Shown one piece after another: positions 5,169-53,857 of a stretch of 64,000 nucleotides of DNA; within the stretch, counting starts at the first letter, position 1; the number at the start of each line of letters is the position of its first letter. This DNA is from Podarcis filfolensis (taxonomy: Eukaryota). The position numbers and the translations under genes were made by a program. The notes under the pieces are model-generated. The model was not told the DNA's origin, ran no database searches, and saw only the letters and a list, made by a program, of their open reading frames with translations. The DNA is taken from NCBI GenBank assembly GCA_964270895.1, contig OZ185438.1. One strand, given 5' to 3'.

Positions 5169-7722
5169 GGTAACATCTCAGCAAAGCTTTGGTAAATTCA
5201 AAGAAATTAGGATTAAACCACAGTTCAAATAAACCATAATTGCCTGAGTTGAGATACAATGGAACACTATGGTTTGTTCATATGAACAGTAGGCTTGCAT
5301 TACTACTACTGCTGCTGCTGCTATTACTATTATTACCATTTGTTTACTACCCTTCATCTGACGATCCCAGGGTGGTTCACAACACAAGTATTCTTATAGT
5401 ACTAAACCATGATTACATCTGAACTGGGCAGTTAGTATTCAAAGAAAAGTTCAAACATCCTCACAGACTAGGTTGCCAGTGGCTAAACTATGGATGTCCT
5501 AGAGAATGGCAGGCATTTATCCTAGACGAAAGACCTCAGGATAGTGGGCTGCAACATTTTTCAATACAATAAAAATGGCCCTAATTAGGCCCAGCTGCCA
5601 GCCTCAGCTAAATGACATATGGGTTTGTTTATTTCAGATCTTCCTAGGTTGCAAAGTTGAAATTAGATGTAGGGTGTTTTATGTGGCAAATAATTTAACC
5701 TCAATTACTTTTACATAAATCATATGAGTGGTTGTCAAGAATGGCTAAACACACATGGTGATGCATGTTGTATTAAAAAGAGACTTGGGGGAGGGGCACA
5801 GCTGATTATTTCAAATTGATGTGAGCTTCAGATTTCCTTATTTTTGCAATTCCTGGCCTCTGCTACCCTACTGTCTCCCACTTTGCCTTCCTTTCTCGGA
5901 GTACAGTCTGAAGCATGCTTGCTCAGGATTAAATTCTTTTCTCAGAAGATGCTTCTCCTAAGTAGATTTAGGACTGCAACCAGAAGTTCTTCTCTTGATG
6001 TCTAGGGAGGCTCTTGGGAAGTTGTTGAACTGCAACCCCCATTTTCACCCGCCAACGTGGGCAATAGCCGAGGTTAATGGGAGCTGTAGTTCAGCAGCAT
6101 CTGGAGGGCACCAGGTTGGGAAACTCTTCTCTATAACACTTCTTTTTCCAGACTTCTATCTTAAGGTGCATACCTTCTTCTCCACTAAACACTTCTTCCT
6201 GTCCTGCCACATATGAGCAGCTTGGCCACTGGAAGCCAGATATTTTCTGTCTGTCCAACCCTTCTCTGACACTAGGAAAGCTCATTCTGGCACTGTCAGA
6301 GGCTTCCTTCCTTCCTTTGTTTGTTTGTTAATTTTATATTCTGCCTTTCCACCAAATGGTGCTTGAGACAGCTAGCCAATACCAATGCAATAAAAGATGA
6401 AGTAAAACATAAAAGGCAGGTAAATAATGAGTAAAACCAGTAAAAACCAATTACTACATAGTTACAGCACAGTTTATTTATATATTTATAAATTTCCCAT
6501 CATTTGTAAATAATTGTGGAGGAGGCAGGCCTTGACAGGACTTCCTTGATGTTTCTACTATTCCCATCACAGAAATCCATTTTACTACAACATATATATA
6601 AATAAATGGCTCTGTCTTTGTCACACAGAGGCAATCATAATAATGATGATTCCAGAATTCCAGATATGGGGTATTCCTAAAGCCCAGTCCACTTCAGAAG
6701 AGCTTTGATTCTAGAACTTCTCCATGCCAGCCTCATCCCCTCTCTCAGCTGTGGTAGACAGGGAAACAGAAGAGTTTGCCTCTAGATATCTGTGTTAAAA
6801 TCTGGTGGAGGAAGCATCTTTGGAGGGTGGTTTATTGAGTACGAATGGCATGAGCTGCTGTGTGGTTGGGGGTCCATGTGTATTGCTTTCACTGAGGCCA
6901 AAAAGGGGGCCTCAAAGGGTCACTAAGGGTCTTCCAGTAGACATGCTTAGGGAGTGCATGTGTGTGTGACACCTATTACTCACCCACTGGGATCTTCAAA
7001 CAATTGAATATTTTAAACTTTTGATTTCCGGTATTATGTTTTAATAATTGAATGACAGTATTAATGAACTTAATATAAATCAATTAATACAAATAAATTA
7101 CCCATGCAACTTAGTAGGACTTCTTCTGACTAAACCAGAGGGTAATTGGGCGTGGTGTATTTGCAAGTCTGTGTAGTTACGAGCTGATATGGTTTTCCCA
7201 AATAGCAAGTGAACAAGAAGCAAAATAAGAGAATACGTGCTTGTGATGGCACTAGAATTGACATGTGATTTTTGTTTTTCACCATGTTGAGCAGAAGTGG
7301 GGAAACGGGCTTGTTTTACTGTGAATGGTTTTGTCTTTGGACAAGACTTCATTGTGTCACACATTCAGAAACCATCTCTGTTGAATAACAGTGTGAGTAT
7401 TTTCCTCAGCATCCCACAGAAAACTCTTCCTTGGGGTGGTAATGAAGCACTGTGAGGTCACAGAGGTGTGCCCTTAAGAGCCTTTGTGATGCTACAGGAG
7501 CTCCTGCTGGTGCTTTGTGTGGCTTCAGAGTTGAAGCAGTGTCTTACAAGGAAAGCAGTGCACTTACTGGAGGATTATTTTGACAGGCTAAAGAATCTTA
7601 GAAAGCTAGAAATACCTACAAAAGGTACAGTTTTGCCATATGCAATGACTGAATAAATACAGCCTTGACCATATTGAAAATTTAAGAGGAGAAAGTTTAG
7701 AAATCTAGTTCTAATGATCACA

Positions 7723-28447: not shown

Positions 28448-28582
28448 CAGGCTTCCTCAACCTCGGCCCTCCAGATGTTGTGAGACTACAATTCCCATCA
28501 TCCCTGACCACTGGTCCTGCTAGCTAGGGAACATGGGAGTTGTAGGCCAAAACATCTGGAGGGCCAAGGTTGAGGAAGCCTG
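28448..28582. mobile_element. Palindromic hAT-like MITE
   Basis: TIR CAGGCTTCCTCAACCT / AGGTTGAGGAAGCCTG; 8-bp TSD TTCTAGTT / GTCTAGTT (7/8). Confidence 0.88.
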
Positions 28583-31008
28583 GTCTAGTTCATTCTAGAT
28601 CAGTCTGTGGGATACTGCACAACTATCCAACACTAGTTTGCAGCCTTACTAGTTTGTACTGGAGAGTACTAGTTTGCAGCCTTAGAAGGTTTTCCCATTT
28701 TCACTATAAAATATTGCAGATTTTTTTAGTCTGTGAAAGTCTGCAATCTACCTGATTCAACCATTTTGAGAATGTAATTTTGGAGCATTTACTAGTGTTT
28801 GGATGCTTGGCTGAGGGTCCAAACAAAACCCAGAATTACTGGATTTTGTTTTTCTTTCTCCCAGTGATCAAGGGGCAGCTGCATGATGGTCACTGGATTA
28901 CCTACAGCAGCTTTTTTCTCAAAACAGCTCCATTTTTTTCTTGCATGTCATGGTTAAATCTATCTATGCTGTAAGCGCAAATAGTGGAAGCTGTAATCAA
29001 AGTCTTAACAACTGAAGTAGGAACCCAGCTCAGAAATGCCTGTCAGCAAGATGAGTGAAAAATGAATAGCAAAGAAGATTTAAGTAGGCATCTGAAGTGT
29101 CTACAAGCATGTACAGTATTAAGGGCACAAACACTTGGCAATTTTCCTGATTCAAACGCTCTGATTATGTCTTATGGCACATAACTGTGCTACATGACTT
29201 AGGTGCCCTGCTCTCAGCGGTGGCTAAACACAATGGAATTAATCACCACTTCCTTTAATAACATTTGCATGTTGCTCTCTATGGCACGGCATTCATCACA
29301 TGCACTTAAGTCTTATCTCTGCCAGTCTGGGATGCCTAGCAGCATTTACAGATCCATTTTCATTGCTGTAAAAAATTAAACAGTTTTGTAAGTAGGAATG
29401 AGAGTATGTGGAATATCTGGCATGACAGTGTGCTGAATGGTTAAGGGGGAATAGAGGAAGGTTATTTATCTATCTTATGGTACATGGCCAACCCTTAATA
29501 ACACTCCGTATCTTTTTGTTTTTCACTTAACATAGGTGAACAGGGCTGCCAACATGGTGCCAACTTATAGATGTCCCTTGTATGTGTTTGAGTGTGATAC
29601 ATACACACTTGTCATTTATCTACGAGCTTTAAAAAAAGGATAGCTTCATTTTTCTGTTTCTACTTCTTAAACCTTCTCCTGCTGTTGTCAACAACAACGA
29701 AAAGCAGTGCCAAAAATAGGTTTCTGACTAAGCCATACTCAGAGCTGATTCATTGAAATCAATGGAATTTAATTGTTAACTTCGTTCATTTCAATAGAAT
29801 TATTATGAGTAGGGTTTAGTTGGATACAGCCCAATAAACTTATTCAGGGAGAGAGAGAGAGAGAGAGAGACTGCTCAACCTGGAAAGCAATATATCTTGA
29901 TTGTATTTCAAAGAGGAAAAAAACCATAGGTTTTTCTTCAAGATGCCTGCCTATGATAGAACTTATTATCAGTCTGGTGTGGCTGTTCTCTGTGTCTAGC
30001 ATAGCAAAACTGTACGGCTTAAATGTTGCAGTGCTTGGAGACGGAGGATAGTTAAGTTTAAGCAAACCAGTCTTTTATCGTGTCTTATACTTTGATCCTA
30101 CTCAGTTATCTGTTTTCTTTCCTGTGCTTTCTGTATATTAATCCCCTTAGCCTGCCTTGCAAGTCTCCTTTGTAGTATCATTTTCACTATAATTTCACTA
30201 TTTTTCATAGTTAAATTGATTAGGCAGGGGAATGGAAGGTCCCCTGTGTCCTGTGAGGTCATTAGTTTCTCATGAAAACAGAGATCACTATTAATTAAAC
30301 AGCAACAAATAAAACAACCCAAAGCACAGAAGAGGAAATAGTTTTTAAACTTTCACCATGTTTTGGACAAAGATGTGCAATACCCTTGTATATTCTTGCA
30401 TTATTTGCTGCATATGTGTAGATATGAATTAGAAGAGTTTTAGCATAGCCAATGAAATAGTGCCCTTTCTTTAAATTGTTTAAGGATTTATCCGCTATAC
30501 ATCTGCATCTTTCTATCACTAATGCAGTGTCTCTGCAGTGTCTGTATAGCATCAAGCTTTGTGACGTGTGAACGATTAGTCAGTGTATCCCCACCCGGAG
30601 CATGTGTTTACTAGATCAGTAAGCCCTAGGCTCAGACTGTGTGATCAATATACTGTTTGCTTATACTGGAAGACCTGGGTAAATTATGTGCTATGATAAC
30701 ACTTCATCATCAAGTGGCAGCTGTTCAGACCATTTGCGTTTCGACTTCTTGTTTTGGTCTTTTTTTATACCAGCCAGAAGATATTGCTAACTTGCCTTTT
30801 CAGAAGAGTGTCTTAGTGCCATGCATTGCTGCTGAAGGATATTTCTTTTGAGCATGAACAAAGCTTGCATAGTTAGCCAATAAGGGCGTGTGTTGTGAAT
30901 TTTAATCCTCAATAGCTTTTCATTCAGAGTCATAAATAGATTTTTTCCATAGCTATCACAACAGCCACTCCTCTCACCAACTCCTAATGTTTTATTGTTT
31001 GAATGCAA

Positions 31009-39239: not shown

Positions 39240-40379
39240 ATGGAAATCTGAACTTGGCATCTCCTTCCCTCTCCCCAGCAGTAAAAACAAAGTGTAGATG
39301 TGTGTGAATGGACTTTTTGGAATGCTAGATCACAGGTCACCAACCATTTTGAACCCATGAGCAGTAGTTCCAAGTATGAAACTGGGCATGTGTATTCAGG
39401 TGAGATTTTCTGAAAGGAGGAGACAAGTCAGTCACTGCGACATTTTAAAGAGGGGCAGAATACTTAATGTTTAGATCTCACTACAGCCATCCCATGTCTG
39501 GGCAGAGGAATCCCTTTGTTGAGGCCTGTTAAAAAACTCTGTGTAATAAATGCCTTGCTATACTTCTAAGGCTGGAGATGGGTAATAAAGCATCTTGAAT
39601 ACGAACCATGTTGCTAGATGCTGGCTGGAATGAACTTGAACATTATTTGTATAGGTCTACTTTCTATGGTGACAAATCACAGCAGATATTCCTTTAATTC
39701 AGTGCCTGACGGTCAAAAAGATTTTTACTGAATATGTTTTTTTAAGTGCCTTTCTTTCTTGAAATAAGAGACTGAAACTCCCACTTTCCCTTCTGTGCTT
39801 ATAGCCACTCATCTTCTCTTGTGTTGAGTTCAAGTACTGGACCAATGCTCCCTCTGTATTTCTTTGCTCAAGGTCTACTTGGTGTAAAGCACTGACCAAC
39901 AGAATACCTTACCTCATATTTTAGCTTGTTCTGATAAAAAACCACACACACAGTTATGCAAAAACGTATGTTTTTCTTAAAGCATGGTTTAAGGCAAGCC
40001 TTATCATCTCAACAGCTTCTTGTTAAGACCATTAGCAACCCCTCCAGAAAGTATTCAACTCTATATGTGTCACAAAGGACCTGTCCTTTACTGGTGGGAT
40101 TTGGTGATAGAAGTCTGTATAATATCTTGACATCTAGTGCTGCGGCAAGATATAGAATTGGCGAGAGAGAAATTGTGTGTGTCTTGTTAAGTAGTTCAGG
40201 GCTCAATGCAAAGATGACATAGTCTGTTTGAAAGGCTCGCTCTAATTCAACTATTAGCTAATTGAAGCACTATTAGTAGTCTGGTACTGTGTGTAGAACT
40301 TTGTACAATTACACATTTACTTGCATAAATCAGGTACAGCTGATATCATAAAAAACTAACATATAAACACTGAACATGT

Positions 40380-40385
40380 TTTATT
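40380..40385 (-). terminator. Candidate SCML2 polyadenylation signal AATAAA
   Basis: First canonical minus-strand hexamer I found after the stop (~2.9 kb downstream), following a TE-free AT-rich UTR-like tract; unverified. Confidence 0.3.
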
Positions 40386-43267
40386 TTCTGCGTAGATGAA
40401 AACATCCAGTTGAAAATAATTAAAATATATATTCTGTTACAAACACTTGATAAGAGTTTGATATCATGCTATATATATAGTACAAGGTTAAGTTTCAGTA
40501 TGGCATTCTTGTTTCGTGTACACAATGCAATGCACACCCTTTCCCCTATTCAATGGCAAAAACCCACACTCCCAAAATGCATGAAGGAGGCTAAAATATT
40601 TGTAGAAAACATTTTAAAACCAACTGTAGGTTATATAAAATGAGTTGAACTATAAGATACTTGTTCTTCCAGTTGACGGCTAAAAATAACCACATGCATG
40701 CAAGATTGGGGTTTTCTCCATATTCAAATCTATTTTTTAATATTCTCTATCATGGAGTGGAATAAGCCACAGTTATTAGAATACACATTGTATTTTACAG
40801 TGTCTCTCTTCCACATGCTAGTTTGTATTAACAGCATTCAGAATTGCCACATTAGAAGCAAAAAGTTTGTCCAAGTATCGCTGATTAAAAAGTGTGGATA
40901 AATTTGGTTGAGTATGCGTAAATTTCACTTAGCCAAAAACTGCAGAAAAAATGTGTGGGGGTCTCTCAGACTGCAGCCACCAACATAAATGCCAAGTATT
41001 TGCTATCACATTACCCATGTCATGCATCTATTTTTCATTAAGATTAATTTCATAAAATATATTGCAGCCCTTGCAGCTCGATTCCAAACATCTGCAAGAG
41101 CTGTGTGGCACAGTTCCAAAGCCGTTCTGGGCTGGTATAATCGTTTGTACACTTAATAGAAGGAACTATTTAGCAGACACAACAAATATTAACATCAGGC
41201 TGTTCATAAAATACAACACACCTCTGAAGTAAACTCATTTAAATCATATTGCAGTGATTTAAAGAAATACTTAATCCTGGAAATTGTTTTGAAACTTTGC
41301 GGTACTTTTTGCTAAACCTGAGTAATACTAGTATACCAGCAAACAAGGCATTTTCAAATGAGTAATGTGTAAAAATACTTTCTTTAACTAGACACATTTG
41401 ATATAAAAAAGGCAATAAGAAATATAAAATCTACCTTCCTTTTTGGACTACATCTTCTCTATCATCACTTGTACTATTACATAGAGTACATTCCATTTCC
41501 TACACAGCAAATGTACACAATTGTCCCTGATATGATATTGGCAGTGACAGCAAAATGTTTTACTATCAGCACTTCTTGTAGCTTATAGAAACAGCACCAA
41601 AGTGTATAATACACACACACATCCATGTGCAGTTCAACTTCTTTGTTAAAATTGTCATTTCTTTCTACTTTAAAAGAAGCTGAGGGCAAGATAGAAAATC
41701 AGAACAAAAAAAAGTCACCACACTTTTTTTTCCAGAAATCTTCCCAGAACAAAATGGCTCAGCACGACATGATGAAAATCCAAAATATTGCATAGTACAG
41801 GGACATTCCCCTGCGTGAATCCACCTGTCCTTTGATTGTTTCTTATCCCTCCAGAAATGGAAAGCAAAGCAGACAGGTGTTAAGTCAATAACAGCAAGAA
41901 GACACATTCACTTTCATCCAGCAAGGGTGATCCACATGCAGCAAAAGGTGCTTTGTGGAGTTCAGACCCGTGCGTCTAGTACTAGAGCTGCGTGCAGAAA
42001 TACTTGCTGGATTTCACAGAACCTAACAGACTTCAGTGCAGTCAGGCCTGAAAGCATGAAATCATCTGAGATTTGGAGTGATAGAGGAAATGGATATAGG
42101 CCCTTTTCTTCCCCTCCCCACCCTGTCCTCCAGCAAGAAGCCTGTAGTTGTATGAGTGTCAAGAAATGATCATAGTGCTCAGCAGAGTGTTCACAAAGCC
42201 TCATACTGCGCATAACAATCTGTAAACAGAGGCCAAAATGGATTGTGCATGGGTTTTTTTTGTTTTGTTTTTACTGGTAAAACTTTTATCTCTACAGTTT
42301 GTCATCTGTCACAGTGCAAAAGTACCTTTTAAAAGACTTTCCAAAAAAATGAACACTATGTACAGCACAGAGGCATGTATCGTACTCACACACAAATATA
42401 CAAGCGCATGAACGTTTTATGTTCATGTTAAGCTCCACAGAGACGGAATGATTCAAAATGATAGGTGGCACAGGTTCCAGTGAGCGAGGAGGAAATTTGT
42501 TCACTCACCTAGAAAAGTTGGCTGTTCAAATCAGCCACGAGAACTTCCTTCTCAAAAAAGAAAAAGAAATACTGCCAGCTTAAATTGTCAACACTACAAA
42601 AATTCCCCTCATAATTTAAAACTCGTTACAAAAGCTTTCTTTTGTTTTTAAACACACAGCGCGCACACATACAGAACATTTCATATGGCTATTCCCTTTA
42701 TGGAAACCTATGTAGCGTAACTGAATAGCGATCTCCTGGAGTATCAGGATGTTAACTAAGAAGTGAACTCATTGCAGACATACCTTTTCCCGTTTAGCAT
42801 TATTAATTCAGTCACCTTTGCAAAACAAAGAATGTTAAGATCCTGATAGCATATTTTAATTCCTTTGGAAATTCAGCTGTTTTGGTTCTGAATGAAAATG
42901 CACCAGCTGAAGCCAAATGGTTGCGAATATATTTAGAACTTCCCATGTAAATACCCATGGCACTGCCTTTCCCTGCACCTTGAAAATTTTGTAAATACAA
43001 AAATGTAACTACTTTCTCTTGACAACAAATTTCATATTGTGGGGAAGAAACTTCTGGAAACCAGTGACAGTTTAGGACTGCACAGTGAATGGAACACTGG
43101 ACACGATCTGCTGGAAACTTGTTTTGCTGAAGTGAATGGACCATCTCCCATCCATTTCTAAGATGCTCAGTCAGGCAAAGTTCCCGCAGTATTGTGCCTT
43201 CCCCCATCTTGATGAACCTGAGAGGTTGTCCAATAAACATGTGACATTATAGTTGTGCATCAGTTGC

Positions 43268-43393
43268 TTAGTATTTCCCTTGCTTAAGTCTCTCGATGTG
43301 GTAGCACAGCTTTAGTGCAGGCCCCAACTTCAGTCCCATGTATTTCATTATCATATCACTCCTCAGTAGCAAGAGAGCCTTTCCATCAATTTC
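43268..43393 (-). CDS. SCML2: SCML2 last coding exon (SAM C-half: [41 protein letters not shown])
   Basis: CAG acceptor, phase 0, SPM/SAM signature, TAA stop. Confidence 0.95.
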
Positions 43394-43585
43394 CTGTGGA
43401 AAGAGCACACAATAAGGATTAACCACCTGGTAATATCTTGGTCTAGAATCCTTGAAAGAAAAAATAGTACTAGGCTTGCATGAAACAATGTGCATCTGCG
43501 TGTAATAAGCTCAACAAGATACAGTAGGTTGTAGAGTACAGCCTTGGGGAACATCATACAGAGAATGATAAATTATGACCTGGGG

Positions 43586-43687
43586 CAGTCTTTGCCAACC
43601 TTGTACCCTCCAGAACACCTGTGCTGGCAGGGACAGATGGGAGCTGTAATCCCAATCATCTGGAGGGCACAAGGTTGGTAAAGGCTG
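43586..43687. mobile_element. Palindromic hAT-like MITE, internally deleted
   Basis: TIR CAGTCTTTGCCAACCTT / AAGGTTGGTAAAGGCTG; TSD ACCTGGGG / ACCTAGGG (7/8). Confidence 0.8.
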
Positions 43688-43710
43688 ACCTAGGGTCTTC
43701 GTCACGATTG

Positions 43711-44263
43711 TGAATGGAAGGAGCCCTTCTATTTGTGAAGCCTAATTAGGTGGTCTAAACCACTGTGCCACTTGGGCTTGCCGATCAGAAGGTCAGTGGT
43801 TCGAATCCCCGCGACGGGGTGAGCTCCCGTTGCTCGGTCCCTGCTCCTGCCAACCTAGCAGTTCGAAAGCACACCAAAAAGTGCAAGTAGATAAATAGGT
43901 ACAGCTCCGGCGGGAAGGTAAACGGCGTTTCTGTGCACTGCTCTGGTTTTGGTGTTCCGTTGCACCAGAAGCAGTTTATGTCTTGCTGGCCACATGACCC
44001 GGAAAAACTGTGAACAAATGCCGACTCCCTCGGCCTGTAAAGCGAGATGAGCACTGCAACCCCAGTCGTCTACGACTGGACTTAACTGTCAGGGGTCCTT
44101 TACCTTTAATTAGGATACCAGTCCTTTTTACAGCAAAGTATTTGTAGACATAGCTTTTTTTTAAAGCTAGTCTCAAGGATATTGCCAAAATACTTCCGAA
44201 TGTAAGTGCACTATTTGTGTTAAATTATTTTATATAGCAGAAACCCTGCCAAGCAAAGAAAAT
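43711..44263 (+). repeat. Inverted copy of 46738-46941 (SCML2 intron end plus first 26 nt of an exon), interrupted by a Sauria SINE
   Basis: 44167-44263 vs revcomp 46738-46834: 84/97 identical, ungapped; 44107-44155 vs revcomp 46859-46907: 47/49; 43711-43750 aligns more weakly to 46901-46941. Confidence 0.92.
43751..44106 (+). mobile_element. Sauria SINE, slightly 5'-truncated
   Basis: Sauria SINE body and tail; 8-bp TSD TAATTAGG. Confidence 0.93.
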
Positions 44264-45033
44264 TCTAAATTATTGGAAGGGTTCTGCAGGGAAGCTATTT
44301 ATTTGTATGCTGCCTTTCCAGAGTTCATGCTCAAGGCAGTTTACAACATGAAAAAAAACCCTCAACCACAACTTAACAAAAGTAGTCAAAAATAATAAAT
44401 AAAACATTAAAATATACAAAACCAAACTGAACCATTTCCAAATAAATCACAACATGATCTAAAATACAAAAAACCAGCATCAACAACCCCAAGGCCCAAG
44501 AGTCTGTTCAGCAGCCTCATCTTTTCGTAGTGGGAGTCAGTCAGCTATAGCCTCAAACTGGGAACCAATTTCAATTTGAGCTGGGAGTTGATTTTAGTCC
44601 TTTAAATGTTTCCTACCAAAAATGCCTGGTTGGATGGTGTATGCTTTTAACAATCAAGCAGTATATAAATTTTATGAAATAAAAGTTTTGCTGGGATTTT
44701 TTTTAACCAAAAGACTGGAAAGTTTTTGCCTGCCAAAATAAAAACAAAATGCAGAGATTATGTAGTCTCCAGTGGGCTGCCAGAGAATTACACAATAACA
44801 GGTCAAGCTTCACAGGCTAATAGAGGCGGCTTCTACTTTGAGAAATAATGAGCATTTGTAGTGAAGAACCCAACAGAGAATGTGAGTCATCACAATGGAT
44901 GGCTTCAAGTGAGCTTGCTATACGTTTTTTTTGTTTGTTTTTAAAGCAAAATGGTTTGTGTCCCTGGGAAAAAACCCACAATCTCTCAAAGGTTGTGCCC
45001 AAGTTTTTTTACTCTCATGTAGTACAATAGACT

Positions 45034-45360
45034 GGGACGCGGGTGGCACTGTGGGTTAAACCACAGAGCCTAAGACTTGCCGATCAGAAGGTTGGCGGTT
45101 CGAATCCTCGCGACGGGGTGAGCTCCCGTTGCTCAGTCCCTGCTCCTGCCAACCTAGCAGTTCGAAAGCACGTCAAAGTGCAAGTAGATAAATAGGTACC
45201 ACTCCAGCGGGAAGGTAAACGGCATTTCCGTGCGCTGCTCTGGTTCGCCAGAAGCGGCTTAGTCATGCTGGCTGTACGCCGGCTCCCTGGGCCAGTAAAG
45301 CGAGATGAGTGCCGCAACCCCAGAGTCGGCCACGACTGGACCTAATAGTCAGGGGTCCTT
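45034..45360 (+). mobile_element. Sauria SINE, young-looking, small internal deletion
   Basis: Intact GGGACGCGGGTGGC start; perfect 14-bp TSD TAGTACAATAGACT. Confidence 0.95.
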
Positions 45361-45407
45361 TAGTACAATAGACTAAATGTTGTAATATAAGCAAACAGCC
45401 TCCTTAC

Positions 45408-45571
45408 GTGTCTTCTGAAGAGTTCTGCGTGAGGCGCTAATGCCTGAGGATCAGCTTCTTTCACGAATCGCATGACTTCATCTATCGACCACATAGAAGG
45501 ATCCTTACTGGGTACACGGGAGGGTTCTCGTTTTAGCGTGCTGAGGTCGGGTCCTGTTGTGGAGCTTGCAG
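45408..45571 (-). CDS. SCML2: SCML2 penultimate exon (SAM N-half: ...SKDPSMWSIDEVMRFVKEADPQALAPHAELFRRH)
   Basis: AAG acceptor and GTAAGG donor, phases 1 to 0, 164 nt; not in the ORF track. Confidence 0.93.
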
Positions 45572-46481
45572 CTTAAATATAAAAAATCAAGAAACTGAGG
45601 AAGGTGGAAATGCCGTTTGTATAACCAGCTCATTTTGGACACACAACATCAAGTTCTTGGGCTACCATTTATAAATAAGAGGGGGCAGATTTCCACATGG
45701 TGATCCTTCCCTGCCATTCCTTGTGAGTGCCTCTCCATATAAGAAGGATTATATTTAATAACAATCTGTAAACACTTAGTGCTTTTTATTATTATTCATG
45801 CTGTGGTTAAATATACATCTGACTGCATTACTGGTTAATTAAGAAGGGTGGTAGGAGGGAAAATACCATATGGTGACTTTTTATATCTATAAAAGATCAC
45901 GTATGTTTCTCTTAAGGCTCCACTACACTTGATGTTCTGCCTACAGAAAAGAGTGAACTGGTATTTGTGAAATGCAACAATTAGCTCATCTGGCCAGACT
46001 TTCATAGGTTAGGAAGGCCTGAATAATACAGATTACACCACACTATATTTAAGGTACAGCAGGTTCAAAAATAGAATTGACAACTGAGAATTAACTACCT
46101 ACCAACTTCTGAGATATCAAGGAGAGTTGAGGAAATACCTAAACCACTGTTAAGGAAGACAGGAATCTTCAAGCATGATTTTTTCCCTACATTTCAGAAA
46201 TGGCTCTTCAGTGACCTACAACCAGCCAATCCCTTATAAACTCATTACAACATGAGGAATCTCTACAGAGCAAGATTGGGTGGCTAACTTGATTTCTGGC
46301 ATGTCTGATAACTTTGCAAGTTTTGACTTCTTTTTCAAATCCTTGCATATCAAAGCACGTTCAGAACCTGCTTTATAAACTAGTTTTTGTTCAACAAGGC
46401 AAAAAAAAGCAATAATATATGAGTTTATATATTGTTAAGAAGACAAAACAGAGCATGGACTTTTAAAGAACTAGATTGTAC

Positions 46482-46763
46482 CTTCAATCCTCCTCTGCAG
46501 CCGATTCCTGTTGACTTCATAGTAACTGCTGTTCCCAGCAGAACTTGACGACAGTCTCCGTAGAATTGGTGCTGTGTTTGAGGTAGCAGTCACTGGCGGA
46601 AGAGAATTCCTGTAATAGGCTGCACTCCCTGAGGTTCGATATTCAGTGGAATTCCGGCAGTTAGGGCTTGCGGGATTGACTAAATTAAGTGCAGAATCCA
46701 TTGAGTCCTCTGAAAATCTGTGTTCTTTGGAAGTGCCATTTTCTTCACTTGGCAAGGTTTCCG
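46482..46763 (-). CDS. SCML2: SCML2 exon, Ser/Thr-rich linker
   Basis: TACAG acceptor and GTACAA donor, phases 1 to 1, 282 nt open; its end resembles recalled human ..HEVKFQMQRKSE. Confidence 0.85.
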
Positions 46764-47409
46764 CTGTATAAAGTAATTTAACATAAATAATGCATTTACA
46801 TTAGGAAGTATTATGACAATATCCTTGAGAATAGGGTAGGTTTTTTTTGGGGGGGGAGAGCTATGTCTACAAATACTTTGCTGTAAAAAGGGCTGGTATT
46901 CTAATTAGGCATCTATGAATGGAAGGGCTTCCTCCATTCAAAGACAAGAACAAGACAGCATTTTCCCCATCTGCACTGGACAGCCTGATGCTGTTTATTG
47001 CCAGTGCACCATCGCTCCCCAGATTATAGTGGAAAAGACACAGAAGTAAGAGGGACTGTGCCTATATGGTAACTAGATTCCCCATAAAAAATACACAAAC
47101 AAGGGCGATTTCAGAGAAAAGGACTCCTGTAGAAGTGGCAGTAATCCCAGATGTGTATGGATTTGGGGTGTAATTTACGAATTGGTGAAGTAAGGAAACT
47201 ATGCCTATACATATTCATTTCTCCAGTTTTCATTAGAATCAACGTGCAGCTTGTTTTGCCTGTCCTAGTACTGAACAATATATGTAGATGTAAACCCACT
47301 GAAATCAGTGAGCTACACCGTATAGTGCAGTCCTGAGGAAGTAGCCTAGTGTGTTATTTGTGTGTTGAATATTTCCCCCTATCCTTCCAAGGTGGGTGTG
47401 CCTGCCACA

Positions 47410-47600
47410 GAATCCAGTACATGCCTGGACTGCATGAGAAAACAAGGAGTCCTTTCTGAATCAGGCCCGTCACCCATCTAGTCCAGCATGCTGTGGTCAT
47501 AGTGACCAGATGCCCATGGGAGGCTTGCAAGGAGGACCCAAGCGCAACAGCCTCTGACAACGGAGGTGAAACATAGCCATCATGGCTAGTAGCTACTTAT
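47410..47600 (-). mobile_element. CR1-derived 3' fragment
   Basis: AATCAGGCCCGTCACCCATCTAGTCCAGCAT...CCAGATGCC resembles reversed CR1 tails; degenerate. Confidence 0.45.
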
Positions 47601-47690
47601 CCTCCTATTCATGTGGGTTTTGGTGTGCTCTTGGGCTAGACTGTCTAGAAATGCAGTGCTTCGTTTGTAAAGAAATATAACAAGAGTTAC

Positions 47691-47804
47691 CTTCTGAGGG
47701 ATGAGCTTCAGTCCTTGGTAGTTTAGGAGACAGGGGGGCAGTATAGGACGGCGAATCCTGAGAATATCGCTTTGTACTTCTGTTGTCAGAGATTTCCTCT
47801 TTTG
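47691..47804 (-). CDS. SCML2: SCML2 exon (AKEEISDNRSTKRYSQDSPSYTAPLSPKLPRTEAHPSE)
   Basis: Polypyrimidine/CAG acceptor and GTAACT donor, phases 1 to 1; PLSPKLP matches SCML2. Confidence 0.9.
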
Positions 47805-50504
47805 CTGGGAGAGGAAAAAAAGGATTCACTTTAAAAAACAACAACCACCTAAGTTGCCTTATGTAGTTCCTACATTTCCTTTGAGGAAATGCTTTGGGCT
47901 GGTTCCTGTAGAAAAAACACCTATGGGAACCCTTGTGGGTTTTTCTACATGGCATGGATCTGTGAATATCTTGCTCATAAACCTTTCTATGCAAAAATGT
48001 ATGCCGATCTTCCATTCTGGTGTAACCACTTCCCTGTATGTGCTCCTCTGCAGAAATCGTTCCAAAGCGCTGTCTTTGGAGAAAACAGTTACGATGATAC
48101 CATTTGGTATTCATGAAGGGCTCTTTTCCCATGCATGTGCTGATAACGTTAGGTGTAAAGTTTATCTCCCCCCCAGTAGCTGAAGGCAGAAACCCCTGTT
48201 CAGTTTTGTAGAAGCTTTTGGTGTTCTCAGATCAGTTCTCTAACGGAAAGCCATTAGAAAGACCAGGCTCTAGGAAGTTGATAGGGCGCTTCCAGAGCTG
48301 GCACCCAAGATGGTAACTGTCCAGAGAGGGTCCCCAAGAGGAGCTTCTTTCTGAAGATTTTACTCCTGAAGCTACCAGGGAAGATGCAGATGAACTGACC
48401 TGCGCAGATGCACCTGATCTCTGAAATGGGTCCACTGAAGAGGTCAGGTGTGATGCCATGCCTAAGGGGTGACTTAGTTCATCAAGACCATAAGCCCCAA
48501 AATGTTTGCTAGGATTTTGGTGTAAGGAGGCAAAACCAAAATGGAGAACAATTTGACCATGACAGAGGGATGCCTATGGAAAGACTTCTTGTGAAGAGAG
48601 GAAGGAAGGTGAAATATAGAGCAGAAACCAAAGGGTCCCCTCTCTTTTTAAGTTCAGAGGTATAGGAAAAAGCTGGGGCAAATGGAGAGCAGAAAAAAGT
48701 TAGCAATGAGCTGACCAAGGGGCAGGAAAAGAGTGAAGGATAAGACACAACTAAGGTAAACATATTTTTTAAAAAACACTACTGGAGGAAAAGACTAGAG
48801 GTACTAAACAAACATACAAACCATAAAAACAAAAGCAAAACTATATACAGTAATATGCCAGAAGCAAAGATCATGGAGAGAGCATGCATGCCATGAACAC
48901 ACTTGGTAAAGTTACAGATAGGTAGCCGTGTTGGTCTGCCATAGTCAAAACAAAAAAATATTTTTTTCCTAGTTGGTCTTTAAGGTGCTACTGGAAGGAA
49001 AAAAATACACTTGGTAAAGGCAGAATACGGCTGATCTGAGAACATAAGAAGCTTCTAAAAATATGAACAGTGATTTCTGCCTTCAGTCATTAGGGGGAGC
49101 TGAACTCCCCACCTGATGTCACCCGTAAGCAGGAAAAAAAAGGTGTATTCTACACTGAAAAAGGAAACACAGTATATCACAGAGGAGCTGCAGTCAATTT
49201 GCTCATTGCAGCATGCAGCAATTGACATAATAAGCAATGATTAAAATGTGCATACTTAACCATCTGTGCATCTTTTTTTTAATGGCCATGGCAGATGCCA
49301 AACTACAGTTTCTCAAAAATATTGAAAGCACAGCCTTCAACTATTTCAGCTCCTGAAAATTGTGGGTACAGAAATAATAAGGTTGGAAGGGTATCATGTG
49401 ACAAAGAGAGTGAGCCAGGAAATCTGACCACTTCCCACCTCTCCCCAGTCATGCGCATCCTCAGTGACCTTAGGCTTCCAGCCACATTTCTCTCAGCCTC
49501 TTGTTTCATATACATAATTCATACAGGGATAACGGACCTTTCATAGGACAGTTGATGAGTTACTGCAATAACACATTTGGCATGCATGGTGGAAATGCTG
49601 CTTGAGCATTTTTTTAGGAAGTAACTCAGCTTTTTTAATCACTGTTGTCTAACAGAAAACCTTCTGAAAAGGCAGTTTTAGAAAATTAAGTAATAATGTA
49701 ATGCCTAGACAACTATGAAACTGGGTAGATTCAAATTCGCAATTAACATCTGCACGTGGCTATCTGAGGAAAAAATATATATAATCTCATGTTCACACAG
49801 CAATCCTATGTATGGCTATCTAAAAATTAAGTTCTACTGAGTTCAATGGGACTTACTCCCAGGTAAGTATACAATATATATGGATTGCAACCACAGTCAA
49901 TTTCTAATAAGTGCAATAAATAAATAATATTCCTTTATAAATCTGATGGGGGGGGGGGAGAGACAAAAACCAAAATTATTTAATCCACACCAAAAATCCA
50001 GCAGCATAAATATGAGGCTTGATGGTGAGGAGTGTCAAATTTTCAAATTGCTTATCAAAATCGGTTTGCTTTCTTTCTGCAACAGCCAATGAGCAGGATG
50101 ATGCCTGAGCAGCAACTGGTGTGGAATTAGCCCTACAAAAGGCACAAGGGAATATTCTGCTTTTCTTTATAAGTGTCTATTGCTGTATATGTTAAAATCT
50201 AGGAACAAGCTAAGACACTAAAACCTATTTTTAAAATCAAGACTCATAAATTCCTATGCCACGCTACACCAGAGAGGTTTCCTTTTAAGACTTAAGGTTG
50301 CAAAATCCATTGAATTTATCAGTGCTTGCTTATGATTGTGCACACATGGTATCAGGCAGCAAAGAAAAACAACAACACATCTTAAGCACAAGACTTAAAA
50401 TGGCTGTTTACACTGATATTCACAAATATAAATCCAACTGTGTGTTGTTGCTTTAAATACACTTCTAAAAATGCAAGGTGGGTTAGGGTGGTGGAGGGCA
50501 TTAC

Positions 50505-53461: not shown

Positions 53462-53857
53462 ACAAGGTAAAGGATCCCTAGACAGTTAGGTCCAGTCAAA
53501 GGCGACTATGGGGTTGTGGCACTCATCTCACTTTCAGGCCGAGGGAGCTGGTGTTTGTCCACAGACAGCTTTCTGGGTCATGTGGCCAGCATGACTAAAC
53601 CGCTTCTGGTGCAACAAGACACTGACGGAAACCAGAGTGCACTGACGGAAACCAGAGTGCACGGAAATGGTTTACCTTCCCGCCGCAGCGGTACCTATTG
53701 ATCTACTTGCACTGGTGTGCTTTTGAATGCTAGGTTGGCAGGAGCTGGAAGAGAGCAACGAGAGCTCACCCCGTTGCGGGGATTCGAAGCACCGACCTTC
53801 TGATCGGCAAGCCCAAGAGGCTCAGTGGTTTAGACCACAGCGCCACCCACGTCCTTT
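53462..53857 (-). mobile_element. Sauria SINE with internal 20-bp tandem duplication
   Basis: Reverse-complement Sauria SINE; TSD ATGTAAAA (53454-53461 / 53858-53865). Confidence 0.92.

Follow-up and report, generated by a model that had tools for sequence, protein, structure and literature searches.

Introduction

Exons looped out by long-range complementary regions in pre-mRNA are included less often, and the splice sites that such regions obstruct are mostly inactive or cryptic (PMC8052449). A second study reports that loop-out skipping by inverted repeats affects above all exons with weak acceptors (PMC13019027). Here, we describe a locus in which a gene carries a backward copy of one of its own splice junctions. 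The locus lies in a 64,000-nt stretch of DNA from the lizard Podarcis filfolensis (NCBI GenBank assembly GCA_964270895.1, contig OZ185438.1), referred to below as the window. The gene, SCML2, is encoded on the minus strand, and its last intron holds an inverted copy of the 3′ end of an upstream intron together with the start of the exon that follows.

Template switching during replication or repair yields small templated inverted duplications within a few kb of their source, and such duplications have abrupt ends. A first-pass annotation of the window, made from the sequence alone, read the SCML2 copy as a built-in cis-antisense element that can mask the 3′ splice site from which it derives. 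Our analysis points, with moderate confidence, to an inverted duplication that is specific to the lineage, has latent potential for pairing and is neutral or almost so.

Results

An SCML2 splice junction has an inverted copy in the last intron

The source of the duplication, arm A, lies on the minus strand at 46738..46956. It comprises the final 193 nt of intron 46764-47690, including the AG acceptor (46764-46765 on the plus strand), and continues for 26 nt into exon 46482-46763. Arm A was delimited by repeat search, BLASTN and RNA contigs, the latter from two contig runs that were guessed to be RNA (X15 and X17) and that come from two related organisms (F and G). The inverted copy has two parts, both assigned to the minus strand. 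Arm B1 (44107..44263; repeat search and BLASTN) is the main part and is antisense to the acceptor region on the pre-mRNA. Arm B2 (43695..43749; BLASTN and alignment) is the distal part, separated from B1 by an insertion that resembles a short interspersed element (SINE). The copy falls within the last intron (43394-45407), where the first-pass annotation had placed it, and is spaced about 2.5 kb from the source arm.

An ungapped repeat search over 42500-48000 reproduced exactly the two inverted blocks claimed earlier: 46738-46834 against 44167-44263 (97 nt; 84/97, 87%) and 46859-46907 against 44107-44155 (49 nt; 47/49, 96%). When 46300-47600 was used as a query against the entire window, sensitive BLASTN fused both blocks into one gapped alignment (46738-46907 against 44263-44107, 79% over 170) and added a third (46901-46956 against 43749-43695, 75% over 56). 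The duplicated unit thus measures about 219 nt (46738-46956), and the same search found no further match to the query in the 64 kb. Two core patterns, of 32 and 27 nt, are each present exactly twice in the window, against a chance expectation of 0. Similarity between the arms is 80-96%, and they are not identical. Both ends of the copy, at 43695 and 44263, are abrupt, and sensitive BLASTN found no homology past the flanking repeats that would indicate a longer original copy.

We also considered an assembly artefact and ruled it out: the arms are non-identical, one of them is split by the SINE-like repeat, and both are present in independent contigs of two other species. The window contains no runs of N.

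Arm A is native and the copy is derived

The 26 exonic nucleotides of arm A encode ETLPSEEN. Squamate gene fragments have EILPSEEN, ETLPIEEN or EILPAEDN at this place and fish SCML2 has ETLPHEEG, and this conservation from fish to lizards argues that the exonic part of arm A is old coding sequence rather than a repeat that became exonic. In its intronic portion, arm A can be loosely aligned with orthologous introns in two squamate contigs, L001 and L003. At the acceptor, the copy reads TATAG/CAGAAAC (the slash marks the junction), as do L001 and L003, whereas the live junction reads TACAG/CGGAAAC. The copy therefore retains the ancestral letters, and it is the live junction that was altered twice after the duplication. 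The copy alone has AAGCAAAG at a place where all species have AAGTGAAG, which fits a segment released from coding constraint. Judged by these sequence comparisons, arm A is native and the copy is its derived partner.

The same alignment offers a view of the junction's own history. The change at the live acceptor (46762-46766, compared with 44235-44239 in the copy) removed a NAGNAG tandem acceptor and improved the AG context, and the copy preserves, like a molecular fossil, the earlier state of this junction.

The Jukes-Cantor (JC) distance between the arms is 0.16. This value lies far above the 1-2% divergence among species A, B and D and below the mismatch of about one third between the window and the L003 introns, and so brackets the age of the duplication. 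No inverted match to their own junction was found in three of three distant squamate contigs (L002, L006 and L008), each of which spans this exon, the exon for the N-terminal half of the SAM domain and the last exon. The squamate contigs were retrieved via protein-fragment look-ups and are all distant, with introns alignable over at most about 60-100 nt; the trait that can be scored in them is the presence or absence of a self-inverted copy.

Repeats interrupt and border the copy

The insertion between B2 and B1 is a SINE-like high-copy repeat of 357 nt (43750..44106, strand not assigned). It carries a GGTTCGAATCC B-box-like motif, is flanked by a repeated TAATTAG(G) and is a direct repeat of 45035-45362 (87-93%). 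Its summed contig depth is 10^6-10^7, compared with about 100-150 for single-copy flanks. Because the element sits within the copy, it must have been inserted after the duplication. ARAGORN found no intact tRNA in the SINE-like repeats. A third SINE-like copy lies in inverted orientation at 53464-53854, 8-9 kb upstream in another SCML2 intron, and its orientation would allow competing long-range pairings, derived from transposable elements (TEs), across many exons.

Further repeats lie at either end of the copy. A palindromic repeat of high depth that resembles a miniature inverted-repeat transposable element (MITE) directly adjoins the distal end (43579..43694, strand not assigned; 36-nt arms, 86% complementary, with a 44-nt loop). 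Relatives of this repeat occur at 28518-28588 and 6077-6123. On the exon side, 34 nt past the end of the copy, a moderately repeated element occupies 44298..44683 (strand not assigned; depth about 2-5 x 10^4). Foreign contigs run from 44298, many loose ends fall at 44683, and no second copy of this element was found in the window.

Repeats on both sides of the copy would be expected if the two arms were themselves copies of a low-copy dispersed repeat, either a TE or a TE-captured gene fragment. Contig depth bears on this alternative. Contigs of two related species (DNA runs X4 and X8) were placed at 80% likeness, and flanking single-copy sequence then has a summed depth of about 100-150 and neighbouring repeats 10^4-10^7. 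In both DNA runs the bin 46782-46980 reaches 5-9 times single-copy depth, and a second X4 contig (depth 149) lies over 46829, as a dispersed repeat would predict. However, positions 46816, 46965, 44157, 44259 and 44294 are each covered by a single contig in both runs (46829 in X8 only). These checkpoints place the excess between 46830 and 46964, a stretch that holds a T8G8 low-complexity run (46839-46858) and a part where the other arm can cross-align. The excess possibly stems from the T8G8 run, from such cross-alignment or from an extra genomic copy. Moreover, there are just two copies within 64 kb, genuine repeats in this region are found at far greater depth, and the arm contains conserved coding sequence and native intron. 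We consider a dispersed repeat very improbable. A TE origin of the arms is largely rejected on the same grounds, with the excess in bin 46782-46980 not accounted for, and the earlier description of the segment as gene-specific and not a TE is supported by the two copies in the window, the conserved exon start and the native intron.

The arms could pair across the acceptor and loop out two exons

Both arms lie inside the minus-strand SCML2 transcription unit and less than 10 kb apart, the geometry of pairs of conserved complementary regions (PCCRs). The 97-nt block spans +26 to -71 relative to the acceptor and contains a CUAAU branch-like motif, identified by eye, at about -38. Pairing of the arms over the branch region, pyrimidine tract and acceptor, with exon 46482-46763 and the SAM N-half exon in the loop, is possible in the way that the first-pass annotation had described. 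At E < 1e-5, the window has only three inverted pairs whose partners are closer than 5 kb: the arm pair, 23338/23940 and 48151/49031. The last of these (48151-48235 / 49031-49114; 79% over 85 nt) is contained in the next upstream intron with 796 nt between its partners, and its 49031 arm is within high-depth repeat sequence.

If the stem formed, the options open to the donor of exon 47691-47804 would be the acceptors at 46763, 45571 and 43393. In the functional cis-antisense version of this idea, arm B would pair with the still unspliced acceptor region and block U2AF and U2, and the donor at 47691 would use a later acceptor. We computed the reading frames of the skipped forms from joined exons. 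Use of 45571 would skip exon 46482-46763 alone, an in-frame loss of 94 residues (282 nt) that keeps the SAM domain. Use of 43393 would skip both looped exons (446 nt); the resulting frameshift would end within the last exon as ...HPSEGN-stop and leave the protein without SAM. The ratio of products would depend on elongation speed, helicases or ADAR.

The arms might instead promote back-splicing, as inverted Alu pairs do, with the donor at 45408 joined to the acceptor at 46763 in a 446-nt circular SCML2 RNA. The arms are indeed located in the introns that flank the looped exons, 2.5 kb apart, with a stable predicted stem, and complementary pairs are enriched outside back-spliced exons (PMC8052449). 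However, the stem covers the acceptor, branch region and pyrimidine tract that this reaction needs and should inhibit it, and the arms show the same neutral-looking divergence that bears on the cis-antisense model below. A role in back-splicing is thus distinctly unlikely.

Substitutions, relatives and mRNA favour neutrality

The two ungapped blocks contain 15 mismatches. Twelve are transitions, six of which preserve pairing as G:U while six give A·C in the sense RNA, and three are transversions; the 6:6 split among the transitions reveals no bias toward stem preservation. Both arms are present in two close relatives, B and D, which are about 1-2% diverged. These share a G at 46816, which gives a G:C pair where the window has G:U, and a T at 46829, which gives an A·G mismatch where the window is paired. 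Arm B of the relatives shows only two 1-nt deletions, in X4, and no compensatory change was found in arm B of either relative. The divergence of the arms in B and D, about 0.9%, equals that of the neighbouring intron.

The first-pass annotation had proposed to examine orthologues for arm retention and compensatory change, and had named neutral divergence without covariation as one of the outcomes that would refute its model. The two close relatives retain the arms with one pair-breaking and one wobble change and no compensation, and the three distant squamates are without the copy. Conservation of both arms with compensatory changes, which characterises PCCRs, was not found in this comparison, which has low power, the arms being kept only in relatives at about 1-2%. 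Neutral divergence without covariation is therefore what we see as far as the data reach, and at that same low power.

At the mRNA level, the dominant contigs of two organisms include both looped exons, with canonical joins and at full transcript depth. One X15 contig begins at 46876, within a 32-nt stretch that is identical in both arms, and X4 DNA contigs also break there, which hints that the copy is present in the X15 organism. The copy arm has in addition tolerated the SINE-like insertion.

Several points weigh against a neutral reading. Folding of the two arms, a check proposed in the first-pass annotation, returned a strong duplex: RNAduplex gave -183.8 kcal/mol for arm A:B1 in the sense RNA, compared with -39.5 +/- 5.1 for 100 shuffles, and 136 A:B1 pairs are retained in the global minimum free energy (MFE) structure of the 3,351-nt segment 47000-43650. 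The predicted A:B1 duplex is stable, as expected of PCCR-type structures, and arm A:B2 adds a duplex of -52.6 kcal/mol. The pyrimidine tract at the acceptor is weak, with 12/20 pyrimidines. Mismatches are fewer in the 49-nt block (2/49) than in the remainder (27/153; Fisher p = 0.018), and a chi-square test across the three blocks gave p = 0.009, a comparison made weak by blocks that were defined post hoc by the alignment itself; the lower divergence could reflect constraint or gene conversion. Finally, contigs drop rare isoforms, so those described above show the major mRNA only, and the organisms they come from, F and G, may lack the copy.

The strength and specificity of the complementarity, which extends over the branch region, pyrimidine tract, AG and 26 exonic nucleotides, the weak acceptor, the well-preserved 49-nt block and the presence of both arms in two related species would all be expected of a functional cis-antisense element. 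There is also precedent, as exon-looping pairings reduce inclusion in human genes (PMC8052449) and inverted Alu pairs are reported to favour skipping of exons with weak 3′ splice sites (PMC13019027). However, there are no skipped contigs and the major mRNA of two organisms has both exons, pair-preserving substitutions are not in excess, and the substitution common to the relatives breaks a pair and is uncompensated. One arm is split by a SINE, and three other squamates are without the copy. Transcription reaches the source arm 2.5 kb before the copy, and the intron that holds the source arm is short; both would favour commitment before pairing. Complementary regions are also depleted around active splice sites (PMC8052449). 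Our analysis does not support the claim of a built-in cis-antisense element, and we regard the model as unlikely, on data of low power in which contigs cannot show minor isoforms. We think it quite improbable that the locus is a self-derived, transposon-free cis-antisense module of a lizard clade that kinetically tunes a weak 3′ splice site and yields a linker-less, SAM-less or 446-nt circular product, perhaps in the germline.

Gene identity and exon structure

The minus-strand exons with Pfam matches encode, in order, MBT, RBR, SLED (two exons) and SAM. Among crystal structures, those of human SCML2 are the best match to the MBT exon (224 bits, compared with 205 for SCMH1). The peptide of exon 46482-46763 matches squamate gene fragments and a single full-length protein (P0008), whose NCBI name is 'sex comb on midleg-like protein 2' (fish SCML2). 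Domain order, MBT structure scores and protein name agree with the earlier identification as SCML2, and an SCML2-like gene is supported at the level of sequence. A search seeded with P0008 for lizard isoform annotations gave only fish SCML2 among the best 120 matches.

Exon borders given in the first-pass annotation coincide with splice joins in the RNA contigs, in which 46763-46482 is linked to 45571-45408 and this in turn to 43393-43200 (X17 record 8, depth 44; X15 records 1 and 5). The exon at 46482..46763 (minus strand, 282 nt), whose acceptor lies inside arm A, encodes a disordered linker between SLED and SAM and is supported by X17 record 8, X15 record 5 and its open frame. The SAM N-half exon, 45408..45571 (minus strand, 164 nt), is the second exon in the potential loop and is supported by its open frame and RNA contigs. 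The coding part of the last exon, 43271..43393 (minus strand), holds the C-terminal half of SAM and the stop, as indicated by Pfam SAM_1, RNA contigs and sequence. The next upstream exon, 47691..47804 (minus strand, 114 nt), was assigned from its GT/AG borders, its reading frame, a peptide ...SPKLPRTEAHPSE that matches P0008 and RNA depth in bin 47578-47776; no splice joint at this exon is among the joints listed for the RNA contigs. Given this exon, the intron that holds the source arm (46764-47690) is 927 nt long. The last intron measures about 2.0 kb, mostly insertions, compared with 1.3-1.5 kb in other squamates.

One X15 contig (46198-46511, depth 12.6) passes the donor at 46482 into the intron, where the spliced path has depth 30.9, and contigs cover intron 46876-47720 at depth 7.6 in the same run. 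This coverage would reflect either appreciable unspliced SCML2 pre-mRNA or DNA in the library. On the 3′ side of the SCML2 stop, four blocks (42856-42914, 42674-42709, 41314-41600 and 40366-40448) are 70-94% conserved in the distant squamate contigs L002 and L006, in which, unlike these blocks, the introns are unalignable. The conserved blocks in 40366-42914 are probably 3′ untranslated region (3′UTR) or regulatory elements.

Discussion

We propose that, in the ancestry of the lizard lineage, about 220 bp of native SCML2 DNA gave rise to an inverted duplicate 2.5 kb downstream, in the last intron of the same gene. The copied piece runs from the 3′ part of the antepenultimate intron to nucleotide 26 of the next exon. 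The copy has since decayed as free intron, by mismatches (about 14%), indels and the SINE-like insertion. As both arms are part of one pre-mRNA, they could in principle form a long imperfect double-stranded RNA (dsRNA) stem that buries the acceptor region and loops out two exons. During transcription, the source arm is made first, at the end of a 927-nt intron, and the copy emerges 2,475 nt later. In most transcripts the stem is probably forestalled, either because the acceptor is committed early or because the intron is spliced out during transcription, which is consistent with the canonical joins in the mRNA contigs. Any effect is probably minor and unselected, such as some dsRNA, possible ADAR editing and low-level skipping or circular RNA.

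The copy likely arose either by template switching during replication or repair or by a TE-associated event in an intron filled with TEs. As a speculation, a reverse transcriptase that had reached the 5′ end of the element starting at about 44298, 34 nt past the copy, may have taken nascent SCML2 pre-mRNA as its new template.

The locus would be informative on either outcome. If the element is active, a single backwards duplication of a junction is enough to create long-range control of splicing, with no transposon involved. It would then also be a natural system for studying transcription speed against RNA folding at a weak acceptor, since close relatives have the copy and distant ones are without it. 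If instead the duplication is neutral, as we favour, complementarity of -184 kcal/mol over an active splice site is tolerated without visible change in the main mRNA. In that case, thermodynamic potential alone would be no predictor of regulation.

Among described systems, template-switch duplications resemble the SCML2 copy in being short inverted segments a few kb from their source with abrupt ends. The SCML2 copy differs in that it has no demonstrable microhomology or junction signature; both of its ends lie near repeats, which may hide the breakpoints.

Local hairpins that sequester splice sites (PMC7404189, PMC11802352) resemble the SCML2 arms in the proposed occlusion of branch region, pyrimidine tract and AG. 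In contrast to the SCML2 stem, whose partner strand is made 2.5 kb later, the known hairpins are mostly short and form as the site is transcribed. The late partner strand means that kinetics should disfavour masking at SCML2.

With inverted Alu pairs (Denisko et al. 2026, PMC13019027; PMC8052449) the SCML2 arms share long imperfect inverted repeats in flanking introns, a weak 3′ splice site, which is the context reported as susceptible, and a young, lineage-specific origin. Unlike the Alu pairs, the SCML2 arms are not TEs, one of them comprises an intron-exon junction of SCML2 itself, acceptor included, and no skipped contig occurs among the major mRNAs.

The PCCRs (Kalmykova et al. 2021, PMC8052449; Raker et al. 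2009, PMC2724269) likewise consist of complementary segments separated by kilobases, which loop out exons and include a splice site in one arm. Their catalogue uses energy classes of -15 to -30 kcal/mol, and the energy predicted for the SCML2 arms is far beyond these. In PCCRs both arms are conserved and mostly measure 10-30 bp, and a depletion near active splice sites is reported for them, whereas the SCML2 arms are about 160-220 nt long, lineage-specific and free of compensatory change, and cover an active acceptor. Taken together, the proposed masking mechanism belongs to a known class, from which the SCML2 case differs in having a self-derived arm that overlaps an active acceptor.

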